From Isurus oxyrinchus (taxonomy: Eukaryota): 64,000 bases of DNA. This document shows positions 3,655 through 59,702 of this stretch, one piece after another. The stretch covers positions 620,001 to 684,000 of the forward strand of contig JANJGN010000052.1 in assembly GCA_026770705.1 (NCBI GenBank), given 5' to 3'. Within the stretch, counting starts at the first letter, position 1, and each line of letters starts with the position of its first letter. Below the pieces are notes generated by a model that was not told the DNA's origin, ran no database searches, and saw nothing but the letters and a program-made list of their open reading frames with translations. The translations under genes were made by a program, and so were the position numbers.

Positions 3655-3794
3655 TCAAACAGTCTGTCGACTTCCTTTCACTGTTTGTTCCTCCCAGACA
3701 CAGACTCCAGCGATAGTGATAACCACAGCCACAAGGAATATCACAGCTCGTATTCCCAGGATCAGGATCACGTGCAGAATCTCTCCTCCACTGT
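3655..3794 (-). CDS. Transmembrane/short-tail terminal exon, activating type: (D)SGGEILHVILILGIRAVIFLVAVVITIAGVCVWEEQTVKGSRQTV*
   Basis: Polypyrimidine+tag acceptor at 3795-3797, phase 1 matches Ig exons, long hydrophobic run containing Arg (CGA 3750-3748), TGA at 3657-3655; copy at 39635. Confidence 0.85.
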
Positions 3795-5477
3795 CTAGAG
3801 AACACACAGAAAGAAATCATCACTGACTCTCCGCTTTCAATCTCTCACTCTGGCTGAACAATCAAGCTTCATATCACTGCAACATTTGCTGTAATATTGA
3901 CCCATCCACTGGGATTCAATGTGGAATGAATGTTTTCATTGTAAACACTCTAAGAGTGGACAATCGGAACTTTCCCCTTAGCGTGGAACATTGGTGAGAA
4001 TGGATCATTGTGCTGTTGGACTCCCTGTCCAATGTTTCTCTCCATTGCTGTGTACAGGATTGTGCTGTAGAAAATTCTGGAAACGTTTTGTGAAGGATGG
4101 AAATCCATCTCGGATGCGTGTGTGAATCGGGCAGGATCGAGATGGACTCCCCCATGGACTTACACCCCCCGCTTAATAAACAGTTCCAATCTTTACCCAG
4201 AGAGAGGGGAGAATGTGGAACTCACTCCCACTGGGAGTGGTTGAGGTGAACGGTATCGATGTATTTACGGGGCAGGAGGGTCAGTAACCAGAGGGACACA
4301 GATTGACGAACTGGAGGGGGAGATGAGGAGAATTTGTTTTGACAGAGCGAGTTGTTGTGATCTGGAAGATTCTGCCTGAAAGGGTGGTGGAAGCAGATTC
4401 AATAGGAACTTTCAAAAGGGGAATTGGATAAACACTTGAAGGAGGGAGATGGGGGCAAAGTGGAGTGGTGGTTAGTGGATCTGATTGGATAGAACATTGA
4501 AAGACCTGGCACAGGCACAATGGGCTGAATGGCTTCCTCCTGTGCTGTATCATTCTCCACTTCCATGATCTCTCCCCCAGTCAGTAACCACTCCAGATCC
4601 CTCTTGAAGGCAACAGAGCAACAGCAACCACCACACCCACGGACAGCACATTCCCGAGGATCACTGCTCTCTGGGAAAAGATGAACTCCCCAACATCCAG
4701 CCTATTCCTGCTTCCCAGAGAGTGTAAACCCTTCAGGGAGGCACTGAGGAAGTTTTCAATAAAATGACATCAAATCTACCGTTTGAGAAATAATTTAATT
4801 CCGATGAACTCACAGCTTGTGAGGCAAACTGGGAAGTGGATTTGCTTGAAAAGCTGAGAGATGCAAGGGTTAAGTTCTACTGTGCACCACTGGTGGTACA
4901 GTGTAACTACAGCGTGACGTTTACATAGGCAATCCCTATTATAAACAAGGACATTGGACATCAGGTGAAATACGGGCACTGGAAAAGTGAGAACATGATG
5001 TAAGCTTTTCACCAACAGGAATTCCCTTCCTAAACCTCTCCACCTCTCTCTTACTCTCAGATACTCAAACAAAATTTCACACAGATTCACGTAAGGAGGA
5101 GTTGGGACAATTGACTGGTCAAAGGGTTAGGTTTCAGGAAGCTTCTTAAAGGAGGATAGAGAGTTGGAGAGACAGAGAGTATCTGTGAGTGTCTCTATGC
5201 ATCTGAGTGTCTGTAATAGACTTTGCAATTTCCATATTCTTCCATAAACATGAAAGGGAACAGAAATCTCAGAATCCAGGTCAACTCTCCGGTGCAGCAC
5301 TGAGGGAGGTCAGGTAACCCACTGGGGAGTATTGTGCTAGTGTGTTTGTTGGTGTCTTTGTGTGTGCTCATATACGAGGGATTGTGTATCTGCAGGTGTC
5401 TATTTAGGTCTGTATATTTGTCTGTGTTTGTGTCATGTTTCAATCTGAGACAGATGATGAAATCTGTGTGCACTCAC

Positions 5478-5630
5478 ATTCCACAGTGATGGTTATGAAC
5501 CCCTCCACTGCTCCATGTTCATTCTCTGCCAAACACTGATAGTCTCCAGTGTCCCTGGATGTAACGTGAGGAATCACCAACCACAGCTCATTGTTGGAAC
5601 TTGTTCTGTTCATTGTGATATTCAGATGTC
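5478..5630 (-). pseudogene. 3' remnant of second C2-set exon of gene A (5' half and acceptor replaced by ~180 bp of unrelated sequence)
   Basis: Matches the 3' half of the intact exon 21279-21560 (NNELWLVIPHVTSRDTGDYQC...TITVE|gtgagt); match breaks at 5630 and resumes in the intron at ~5810. Confidence 0.8.
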
Positions 5631-5953
5631 AGGGCAGGACTCAGCAAGACAGATCGCATGTTTACCAACAGAGAGTGAACAATAATTTATATTTAAAGGG
5701 AAGAGAGTGCTGATTGGTTGGCAAGTGGTCTCTGATAGGTGGAGGTGTTGCCATGGAAAATAATGTGTGTGAGATTTAAAGTTTAAACAGCTTGTCTCTT
5801 CATTCAGCAACAATCAAATAAAGATCAATTAACTTCTATGGACTGTGAAGCTAATTGAGAGGCCTTAGAATGTGGATACTGAGAACGGGCTGCACTGTCA
5901 GAGGGTCAGCGCTGAGGGAGTGCTGATGTAGAATGAAGGATTTCTCAACTTAC

Positions 5954-6250
5954 CTTGTACAGTTAGTACGAGGGTCCGCTCCGATGAAACAGATGGATAT
6001 CTCACTCTGCAGCTGAGAGTGTGTCCGTGGTGTTTGAGTGATGGGATCAGGGTCAGAACAGAAGTATAGGTCAGAGTGACACCATGCTGAGTTACAGTGT
6101 TTGAGACTGATCCACGTACGTCAGTGGGAGTGTCCCAGGTTAAGACAGGTGCTGCTGTTCCATTGCACGTTGTGTTGAAGGTGCAGCTTACATCCACACG
6201 CTTTCCTGCAATAATTTCAGCAGGGAATATCGTGGGTTTATCTGTGAATT
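5954..6250 (-). CDS. Siglec-type C2-set Ig exon (domain 2), gene A
   Basis: 297 nt, phase 1/1, tag acceptor and G|gtaagt donor; SCTFNTTC (C-x5-C as in Siglec domain 2), LTW, HHGHTLSCRV. Confidence 0.9.
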
Positions 6251-57083: not shown

Positions 57084-57125
57084 CCTGTCTCTGTCTTTCT
57101 TTCTGTGTCTGTCTCTCATTCTCTA
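57015..57125 (+). repeat. (CT)n-rich microsatellite in 3' UTR (copy at 59905-60062)
   Basis: Direct inspection. Confidence 0.9.
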
Positions 57126-58006
57126 TCTCCAGCTCCTCCTTTAAGATGCCCGTTAAGAACTGACTTTGTTGACTCAGCTGTTGGTCTCCTGTCCCTAATA
57201 TCTCCTCATGTGCCTCAGAGTCAGGTGAAGATGTGACTAACAATCCCCGGATGAGCCTTGGGACGTTTTGCTACATTGAAGGTGCTAAAGAAATGCAAGT
57301 TGTTGTAGTAACTCTGATCTGCTTCGATTAACAATGGAACCACAAAGGCTCCTTCGACAGGGCGTGTGTGCAGCAGGGTCACAATAAATACATTGATCTG
57401 TGAGATTTTTAATTCTTTCATCGAATGTGGCTGTCACTGGTGATGTCAGCGTTAATGCCCATCCCTAATTGCCCTTGAGAAGGTGGTGGTGAGCTGCCTT
57501 CTTGACCCGCTGCGGTCCATGTGGTGTAGGTACACCCAAAGTGCTTTTAGAGAGGGAGTTCCAGGATTTTGACCCAGCGACAGTGAAGGAACGGTGATAT
57601 ATTTCCAAGTCAGGATGGTGAGTGACTTGGAGGGGAACTTCCAGGTGGTGGTGTTCCCATGTGTCTGCTGCCCTTGTCCTTCTAGATGGTAGAGGTCGTG
57701 GGTTTGGAAGGTGCTGTTGAAGGAGCCTTGCTGAGTTGCTGCAGTGCATCTTGTAGATGGTACACACACTGCTGCCACTGTGTGTTCATGGTGGAGGGAG
57801 TGAATGTTCAATGTGGTGGATGGGGTGTGGATCAATCGGGCTGCTTTGTTGTGGATGGTGTCAAGCTTCTTGATTCTGTGCTTTGTGCAGAAGTGGTTTA
57901 AAGAGACAGTCCCATTCGTTGGTGTAAGGTTACAGTGTGCTCTGTGTCTGTGCTGCACTGACTCGCTGCTATATGATAACCACAGTGTGATATTGTGTTA
58001 TTGCAG

Positions 58007-58088
58007 GAGAAAGACAGCGATGGAGGAGAGAGTTTCAGGGACCAGTGACATTGCATTGACCCCCAGTCCACTCTCTGTGAAACACCAG
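58007..58088 (+). CDS. Duplicate cytoplasmic exon 1b
   Basis: 82 nt, intact cag/gt, N>K change relative to 1a. Confidence 0.7.
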
Positions 58089-59453
58089 GTACAGGAACTG
58101 TTTACACTCACTCCAAAGCTTCACTCTCAGTGTGTAGACAACACATGTCCCAGATTCCCACTGATTTGTACCTGTGGAGTCAGCAATGGTTCAGTATCAT
58201 GCTGTCTCTCTGTTATGACACAGCAACTGGTAAAGGCTGTTGTTTAAAATCCCAGAGGGAAACTTTAAACAACTGTCATAACCTATATTTCCCAGTGGAA
58301 TGTTTGAGATGCATCTCTAAATTCAGGAATAAGACCATCAGTTCTTGAGATGGGTTTATATCAAACTACATGAGACATTTATTAATTTACACAAGTTAAA
58401 CAAATGCACGTGGCTACAAACTAGTATTATCATAACTTTATAACAAATTCCCAAACTAATCTCCTCTAAGATAACCCATAGACTTTAAGCAGATTCCAAG
58501 CAAAGCATTTTCACCTCACAAATTCCAAATGAGGTTCTTTTCACTTTGGTTCCTTTGCTAACAGGTGTAGGCTTACAGCTGCTTTGATGTTACAAGCCTC
58601 TGCTCTGCACACACAAAACTGCTCAAGTTATACCCAATGCTTCTCTTTGAATGTAAATTCTCATTGTATCATCAGGACCTTTGAACTCCATCTCTTCTAA
58701 CAATAAATCCCGTTTCATAGTATCAATTTTATTAGTAATATAAACATTGATTGGTTTAAGAATTCACTCCCAGGCTTTGAATCCTCCTTTTAAAAATGCA
58801 ATATGCCTCTTTACCTCTTTGTTTACATCTCAAAGCTACTATACATCAAAGTCCCCAGACCGGCTGTCTTTAATCCAATTAAAACACACACACACACACC
58901 CACAGACTAAACCTCTGTTTAAAAAGACAATTTCCATTTACAATACATACATGAATAGATTCATAATCCTTCCTCTCTCTTTCTCCCTCTCTCTCTCTTT
59001 CTCATCATGTCTCTGATTACAAGTTTCATGTTATTGAGCCTCACACCAGGCACCTGAGTGCAGAATCTAAGCCAGCACTCGCCAGAGACATTTCAGAGGG
59101 ATTGCGAGACTGACAGAGGGTCAGTACTGAGAGAGTGCTGCACTGTCTGAGGGTCAGTACTGAGCGAGTGCTGCACTGTCGGAGGGTCAGTACTGAGGGA
59201 GTGCTGCACTGTCGGAGGGTCAGTATTGAGGGAGTGCTGCACTGTCAGAGGGTCTGTACTGAGGGAGTGCTGCACTGTCAGAGGGTCAGTACTGAGGGAG
59301 TGCTGCATTGCCATAGGTGGTGACTTTTATATGATATGAGAGAAATTTAAACCCACTGAGACATGACTGACACTAACGAGGCTGCACAATAATTTAACCC
59401 TATCAGTGCCAGTAAATGATGTGAGGATGTCTTCTGTTTCCATTTCTCTGTAG

Positions 59454-59702
59454 GGTAAACAGAACGTGCTGATTACTGAGCCCCGGAAAACAGCCAGAGA
59501 AACAACTAGTGAGGGGGAGACCCCAGCTCCCTGGGGTCTCTCTGAAGGTGCAGTGGGAGGCGATGCTGGACATGGAATCCCTGACAATCCCAACGACCTT
59601 CTCTACGCCAATCCCCAAGTCTTCAGGGTGCCCAGTGGTGATGGGTCTGTCCACAGGGAAGAGGAGACGGAATACGCACAGATCAGATTCAAGCGAAACT
59701 GA
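59454..59702 (+). CDS. Duplicate terminal exon 2b: ...DLLYANP...EEETEYAQIRFKRN*
   Basis: Open frame, intact acceptor, AATAAA at 60308-60313. Confidence 0.72.
   Translation, partial: GKQNVLITEPRKTARETTSEGETPAPWGLSEGAVGGDAGHGIPDNPNDLLYANPQVFRVPSGDGSVHREEETEYAQIRFKRN

Follow-up and report, generated by a model that had tools for sequence, protein, structure and literature searches.

A stretch of 64,000 nucleotides (nt) from the shark Isurus oxyrinchus (assembly GCA_026770705.1, contig JANJGN010000052.1, positions 620,001 to 684,000 of the forward strand; hereafter the window, with position 1 as its first letter) is, taken as a whole, probably best explained as one stretch of a large and recently reshuffled cluster of sialic acid-binding Ig-like lectin (Siglec) family genes. 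Four gene copies of the Siglec type, here called A to D, lie among large direct and inverted duplications of 90-98% identity. Each exon type was searched singly against the window, and these searches returned six Siglec-like V exons, four C2 exons, a second immunoglobulin (Ig) exon in one intact copy and two remnants, two transmembrane (TM) exons with a buried arginine (Arg-TM exons), and a tyrosine-bearing last exon in two copies. Leader exons (MIGKSYFLLSLLQ, with a GT donor), five in all, start at 510(-), 27068(-), 34982(+), 42759(+) and 63648(+); the outermost two, 471-510 (-) and 63648-63687 (+), belong to genes running off both ends, and thus the cluster extends past the window on both sides. 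The original prediction, made from the sequence alone, had placed here a paired activating and inhibitory Siglec-like receptor system formed by genes A and D, and its exons, frames and motifs proved to be real and correctly placed and framed.

In the family as we propose it, the exons for the Siglec V-sets (from one to several), for the C2-set and for the I-set domain would be interchangeable, all being phase 1-1 Ig exons, and would be joined to either of two 3' modules: an Arg-TM exon with next to no tail, or a neutral TM exon with two cytoplasmic exons behind it, which carry a tyrosine in the position of an immunoreceptor tyrosine-based inhibitory motif (ITIM) and the motif TEYAQI. Gene A ends in the first of these modules and gene D in the second.

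10818-11195, minus strand: gene A V1 exon, type A V-set, YFFRIE arginine present
6979-7347, minus strand: gene A V2 exon, starts AEPSQ, extra cysteine (YPSCLENQ), YFFRIE arginine
5954-6250, minus strand: gene A C2-set exon, SCTFNTTC, two cysteines like MAG domain 2
5473-5628, minus strand: gene A second Ig exon remnant, 5' half replaced
3655-3794, minus strand: gene A TM exon, buried arginine, 12-residue tail, TGA stop
42759-42798, plus strand: gene D leader exon, 6 kb upstream of D V1
48796-49161, plus strand: gene D V1 exon, type A, YLFRTD arginine present
49979-50347, plus strand: gene D V2 exon, starts VGLSQ, no extra cysteine, YFFRIE arginine
51076-51372, plus strand: gene D C2 exon, 294/297 nt identical to gene A C2
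51540-51719 and 51767-52012: runs of N, with a 47-nt island between them
53672-53768, plus strand: gene D TM exon, no charged residue, phase 1 to 2
54924-55005, plus strand: gene D cytoplasmic exon 1, tandem copy at 58007-58088
56567-56815, plus strand: gene D last exon, first copy, LLYANP and TEYAQI, then stop
59454-59702, plus strand: last exon, second copy, intact, part of a 3.08 kb tandem duplication

The TM segment of gene A reads ILHVILILGIRAVIFLVAVVITIAGVCVW and is followed by EEQTVKGSRQTV and a stop, leaving a tail of 12 residues without tyrosine, as had been predicted for exon 3655-3794. Between its C2 and TM exons, with their AG/GT splice sites, the frame is kept (phase 1 joined to phase 1), and all four V exons of genes A and D are phase 1-1. 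The tail of gene D (54924-55005 plus 56567-56815) is about 112 amino acids long, close to the 110 or so foreseen, and has the expected two tyrosines, one in LLYANP and one in TEYAQI, behind a neutral TM segment. A basic TM segment with a short tail in one gene, set against a neutral TM segment with a tyrosine-bearing tail in the other, is a hallmark of paired receptors, and A and D display it. Leaving its assembly gap aside, gene D, of the tyrosine-tail type, is the only structurally complete gene in the window.

The assignment to the Siglecs draws on several lines of evidence. In Pfam all V exons match V-set and Ig_CD22, the C2 exons match C2-set_2, and the second Ig exon matches I-set/Ig_3. 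Among solved structures in the PDB the best 18 sequences for V2 are all Siglecs (E 2e-15 to 2e-7), headed by Siglec-5 (60 bits), MAG (58) and Siglec-8 (57) and followed by CD33, Siglec-7, sialoadhesin, Siglec-10 and Siglec-15; MAG (Siglec-4) scores as high as the CD33-related Siglecs, so that the bit scores do not separate the two. The YFFRIE of V2 aligns on the YFFRVE of Siglec-5, and the B- and E-strand cysteines align too. The essential strand-F arginine is present in both V exons of gene A, in D V2 (YFFRIE) and in D V1 (YLFRTD), and is a lysine in gene B (YFFKIE). Cysteines for the predicted B-E disulfide (GSCVQIPC, DCSLIINN) are found in the V domains and none occurs in strand F, as far as sequence can tell. 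The SCTFNTTC of the C2 exon aligns on VSCMVPDNC in domain 2 of MAG, with both cysteines matched, and the interdomain cysteines are present in V and C2. By these marks the V exons clearly read as Siglec V-sets, and the predicted Siglec character, to which the names given by NCBI to the homologues also point, has stood up.

Among 1.84 billion representatives searched, 29 matched at below 1e-30, many of them with two to four V stretches, and all of the representative matches whose names were checked came from sharks, rays or bony fish. Homologues of 65-87% identity are named 'sialic acid-binding Ig-like lectin 8/12/13/14' by NCBI in Scyliorhinus, Cetorhinus, Mustelus and Hypanus; the names extend over S. 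canicula, S. torazame, Cetorhinus, Mustelus, Hypanus and Pristis, and some models are called 'MAG-like'. Models at a greater distance (36-42% identity) go by the names 'MAG-like' or 'Siglec 5' and are mostly from gar, eel and catfish but also from the electric ray Narcine and the shark Heptranchias; in the bony-fish short models (gobies included), as in MAG, this figure holds for the V-set. Unlike the shark cluster, MAG is a single conserved gene with five Ig domains and without paired forms.

The elasmobranch models, which include Cetorhinus maximus XP_078389734 ('Siglec 12 X3'), S. torazame XP_072326180, S. canicula XP_038670873 and Mustelus asterias XP_078093144/5, are automatic predictions with one to four V domains, and share with the window the leader MIGKSYFLLSLLQ, the V types, the V-V junction (QVS followed by AEPSQEWKG in the window and in shark gene models), the C2 and I-set exons, the Arg-TM exon and the tail. 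Nearest to gene D is the Cetorhinus model, with its type A V, type B V, neutral TM and tail, the last two of which match those of gene D, and the Arg-TM exon has 78-80% identity to the C-terminus of the S. torazame model. A V-domain tree unites A V1 and D V1 with the first of the two Cetorhinus V domains in a clade (100/98) and places the type B domains loosely with the second Cetorhinus V. In the same tree catshark models of the ITIM type and of the Arg-TM type are sisters both in V1 and in V2; among catshark relatives, sister V domains are thus combined with one or the other of the 3' modules seen here, Arg-TM exon or ITIM tail. The tree and the shared modules together imply that the stacking of type A on type B and both 3' modules predate Isurus oxyrinchus. 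Human SIGLEC12 also has two tandem Siglec V-sets ahead of its C2 domains, and the name 'lectin 12' of the shark models presumably stems from this arrangement; the shark second V differs in its extra cysteine and AEPSQ linker, and the likeness is one of domain order, which does not by itself imply orthology.

Direct splice evidence for the Arg-TM form comes from aligning to 3600-7450 the contigs of four runs, which stem from three studies and two coded organisms. Contig depth is concentrated on exons, and all four runs show the joint between 3794 and 5954 (GT..AG, minus strand), which bypasses the second Ig exon remnant at 5473-5628. Spliced contigs joining the C2 exon 5954-6250 to exon 3655-3794, on which the original prediction depended, are therefore on record, from this copy or from a paralogue. 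Loose ends of the contigs show a V exon ending in LHVS spliced to a V2 start of the AEPS type, V spliced to C2, and the second Ig exon spliced to a neutral TM exon. At 95% identity or more, these splices are thereby established for the family but not for the copies in the window themselves.

The last of these joints bears on the gap in gene D. The gap starts 167 nt past the donor of the D C2 exon, inside a 33-bp minisatellite; it is intronic and cuts no visible exon, and the frame from C2 to the TM exon is kept both by a direct joint and by one that includes a phase 1-1 Ig exon. In genes A and C, however, about 330 nt separate C2 from the second Ig exon, and the equivalent position in gene D falls inside the gap, which may hide a further Ig exon. 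Past the gap, in 52013-53671, neither a second Ig exon nor paralogous intron sequence was found. In a spliced contig of X2, with its loose end at 5476, the second Ig exon is joined to 28 nt identical to the start of the D TM exon, and so gene D or a close paralogue probably does have this exon.

At its 3' end gene D has been altered by a tandem duplication of about 3.08 kb (54311-57317 versus 57394-60242) that includes both cytoplasmic exons. Both tail copies are intact and differ in few residues, which gives two possible 3' ends; the exon at 59454-59702, taken by the original prediction for the end of the gene, is real and intact but is the second copy, the first being at 56567-56815. In both copies the proximal tyrosine motif is LLYANP, with proline at Y+3, where three other species have isoleucine or valine (LLYINV, LLYANI, LLYASI) and where the elasmobranch models have a consensus ITIM. 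As a predicted signalling motif LLYANP is not a consensus ITIM. CD33-related Siglecs combine an ITIM close to the membrane with a more distal ITIM-like motif of the TEYSEI/V type, and of these gene D has the distal one, as TEYAQI.

Gene A has no leader of its own. No leader exon was found for it in 11196-26948 by peptide pattern, tblastn or sensitive blastn with a 181-nt leader region, and the only leader upstream of its exons is that of gene B, at 27029-27068. Gene B is the next copy on the minus strand, and gene C lies on the plus strand.

27029-27068, minus strand: gene B leader exon, MIGKSYFLLSLLQ + G, donor GT
25738-26106, minus strand: gene B V-set exon, YFFKIEF, essential arginine replaced by lysine
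24497-24793, minus strand: gene B C2 exon, donor lost, CT where paralogues have GT
21279-21560, minus strand: gene B second Ig exon, I-set/Ig_3, intact, phase 1-1
19952-19955: deletion junction, 3.58 kb missing that the mirror copy has at 39302-42879
34982-39774, plus strand: gene C, pseudogene, leader 34982-35021
35952-36327, plus strand: gene C V exon, two stops and a 1-nt insertion
37187-37483, plus strand: gene C C2 exon, one stop
37812-37964, plus strand: gene C second Ig exon remnant, half deleted, as in gene A
39635-39774, plus strand: gene C Arg-TM exon

The missing leader is accounted for by a 3.58 kb deletion on the B/A side as compared with the C/D side. In the mirror-copy alignment 19952-21431 corresponds to 39302-37807 and 18643-19955 to 44190-42879, the junction at 19952-19955 is clean, and its flanks are 93% identical on each side. 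Read from this alignment, the putative deletion took out the Arg-TM exon of gene B together with the leader exon of gene A, which is therefore of doubtful standing as an independent gene and could be expressed only via the leader of gene B. Since all Ig exons are phase 1-1, splicing from the B leader into gene A would keep the frame. Gene B itself is decaying: it has a lysine for the essential arginine, in a V exon that is otherwise 97.8% identical in nucleotides to that of D V2, it has no TM exon, and its C2 exon has CT at the donor, so that the frame continues into the intron. Gene C, with its stops and with a frameshift in the V exon directly upstream of the codon for the essential arginine, clearly reads as a pseudogene. 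The predicted logic of a charged TM segment in one receptor and a tyrosine tail in the other holds for the family, as the catshark relatives illustrate, but less well for the pair in this window, where the Arg-TM copy is without a leader and the proximal motif of the other copy has drifted.

Functionally, the V domains with the arginine would be expected to bind sialylated ligands, the tyrosine tail might recruit SH2 phosphatases and so dampen the cell, and the Arg-TM form might pair with an adaptor that has an acidic TM segment and an ITAM (immunoreceptor tyrosine-based activation motif), and so activate it. Several points weigh against this picture and against the cluster explanation in its simple form. 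The adaptor FcR-gamma was not found in sharks in a 2014 survey (PMC4016189). The proline at Y+3 of LLYANP makes the inhibitory strength of the gene D copy doubtful. Moreover, D V2 looks like an exon of the first-V type, given its 97.8% identity to the V exon of gene B, its nearest copy, its VGLSQ start and its want of the extra cysteine seen in A V2 and in most 'second V' domains, and the V1-V2 stacking is accordingly less sure. The contigs are 95-99% identical to the window and may derive from paralogues: at 3689 the base differs from the T of gene A in all four runs, and at 6115 a base other than gene A's C accounts for all of the depth in three runs and for most of it in X1. A further private mark of gene A is the segment NSNSYSYYPA. 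That the runs are RNA is itself a guess, for which the spliced joints argue. Lastly, the deletion junction could be an assembly error, the region being rich in repeats and containing a gap.

It is a real possibility, to which we would give somewhat less than an even chance, that the window holds no working pair at all: gene A, deprived by the deletion of its leader and promoter-proximal part, would then be a dead set of exons behind the decaying gene B, only gene D would be functional, and any pairing would take place elsewhere in the genome. The five leaders, none of them within 11196-26948, the deletion, the losses of gene B, the state of gene C, which is the nearest Arg-TM paralogue, and the contig bases at 3689 and 6115 all fit this alternative. 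Against it, all four of the gene A exons have open frames and consensus splice sites, both V exons have kept the essential arginine and all cysteines are retained; splicing into A V1 from the leader or the Ig exons of gene B stays in frame; and in X1 about 16% of the depth at 6115 has gene A's own base. The deletion may be recent, however, in which case intact exons in gene A are no proof of function.

It is improbable, in our view, that the arrangement is in part an assembly artefact, with near-identical repeats near the gap misjoined or collapsed so as to create the B/A deletion junction, the tail's tandem copy and the inverted copies. The window does contain two runs of N and many repeats of 90-98% identity and up to 2.4 kb, and the left edge of the gap is minisatellite. 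Unlike collapsed repeats, however, the copies differ by 2-13% and have copy-specific insertions, namely 1.74 kb and 0.93 kb in the V1-V2 intron of gene A and a 3.5 kb long interspersed nuclear element (LINE) at 15079-18643, and the deletion junction is clean, with equally similar flanks.

Within the cluster, then, the relationship between genes A and D can be followed along their length. The claim that they share a V-V-C2 ectodomain was right as to architecture, and their C2 exons are nearly identical, with 98% amino acid identity, but V1 is only 76% and V2 only 86% identical. At the nucleotide level the intron upstream of V1 is 87% identical and the V1 exon 86%, the V1-V2 intron 98.4% and the V2 exon 92%, the V2-C2 intron 95.9% and the C2 exon 99%. 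The V exons are the most diverged parts, with a divergence above that of their flanking introns, and even their synonymous divergence exceeds that of the adjacent introns, which indicates patchy conversion from other copies together with selection. The V2 exons of A and D are separated by 17 non-synonymous and 6 synonymous changes, clustered at residues 32-48 and 107-116; pairwise ratios of non-synonymous to synonymous divergence (dN/dS) among V exons are 0.4-0.9, the exception being 1.98 between the V exon of B and D V2, a value that comes from only 8 differences. In C2 there are no synonymous differences where about three would be predicted from the intron divergence, which is suggestive of gene conversion of this exon. 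The likeness of A and D is therefore a mosaic of duplication and patchy conversion, and the notion of ectodomains homogenised throughout fails, as only C2 looks homogenised.

The same V domains raise the question of the ligand. It is unlikely, though conceivable, that these are receptors of the Siglec fold whose ligands are proteins or glycans other than sialic acids, in which case 'sialic-acid receptor system' would be a misnomer. Some mammalian Siglecs and PILR-like V domains bind proteins or other glycans, and natural loss of the arginine needed for sialic acid binding is known in some primate Siglecs. The natural change of this arginine to lysine in gene B would suit such a view, as would the rapid divergence of the V exons with changes in the loops at residues 32-48 and 107-116, and the presence of PILR alpha/beta among the PDB matches of V2 (weak, E 5e-4 to 1e-3). 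However, four out of five intact V exons, like most homologues, have kept the essential arginine in its YFFR(I/V)E context, and the best eighteen PDB matches are all Siglecs, with PILR trailing by about 37 bits.

The closest parallels are the human pairs SIGLEC5/SIGLEC14 and SIGLEC11/SIGLEC16 (PMC4042635, PMC13358205), where, as in the shark cluster, neighbouring genes share ectodomain exons, an ITIM-type tail in one member stands against a basic TM segment and short tail in its partner, much as D compares with A, and similarity is kept by conversion in a cluster with inverted duplications. There are also differences. The human pairs have ligand-binding domains that hardly differ, whereas the V domains of A and D are their most diverged parts and fall short of the high similarity expected in linked paired receptors; the shark Arg-TM copy has no leader of its own; and the proximal motif of gene D departs from the ITIM consensus.

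A more far-reaching reading joins two proposals: that the elasmobranch family is a sister lineage of the CD33-related Siglecs, and that the B/A deletion has made a chimeric receptor. We regard this joint reading as tentative and rather unlikely. The deletion may have produced an Arg-TM receptor with up to six Ig domains that is driven by the leader of gene B. If the sister lineage is real, clustered and fast-evolving Siglecs that swap an ectodomain cassette between a tail with ITIM and switch motif (ITSM) and an Arg-TM end would date to the first jawed vertebrates, and would later have been lost or reduced in teleosts. According to a teleost study, fish genomes have no CD33-related inhibitory Siglecs (PMC7226832), and in the whale shark genome paper Siglecs are among the gene families arising in gnathostomes (PMC8455134). 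A 2025 review of sialoglycan-binding proteins covers paired Siglecs without mention of sharks. Our literature searches turned up no account of Siglec clusters in sharks or rays beyond the passing mention in PMC8455134; the family is known in the sense that it is machine-annotated in other sharks. Clustered shark Siglecs with both signalling forms would point either to the origin of Siglec-type paired receptors at the base of the jawed vertebrates or to a striking convergence there, and the diverged V domains would offer a natural set for studying the arms race over sialic-acid mimicry. To the annotated models the window adds a worked example of decay and recombination at such a locus, a drifted ITIM position and splice evidence for the Arg-TM form.

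Repeats are plentiful between and within the genes. The 33-bp minisatellite, with a unit of about GTCAGTACTGAGGGAGTGCTGCACTGTCGGAGG, occurs on both strands in introns and intergenic stretches of the cluster, where it creates long false open reading frames (ORFs; SLSTDPPTVQH, VLHCQRVSTEG); it may have been a substrate for rearrangements and the cause of the assembly gap.

1331-2308, 21693-22043, 27880-28551, 34256-34559, 41123-41525, 56038-56423, 59109-59307 and 51494-51539 (gap edge): 33-bp minisatellite

Retroelement pieces lie at 15079-18643 (-), 23549-24282 (+) and 28890-31146 (+); RVT_1 reverse-transcriptase ORFs at 16549-18093 fall within the B/A intron, ORFs resembling reverse transcriptase also occur within the C2 intron of gene B, and 29359-29769 gives a weak gag/aspartic-protease match under the Pfam cut-off. 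Inside the leader-to-V1 introns there is an inverted repeat of 2.4 kb and 97% identity (12665-15079 versus 44187-46601), the ORFs of which had no Pfam match. Upstream of the gene C leader, at 33507-34118, lies a tandem repeat of about 14 copies of 44 bp.

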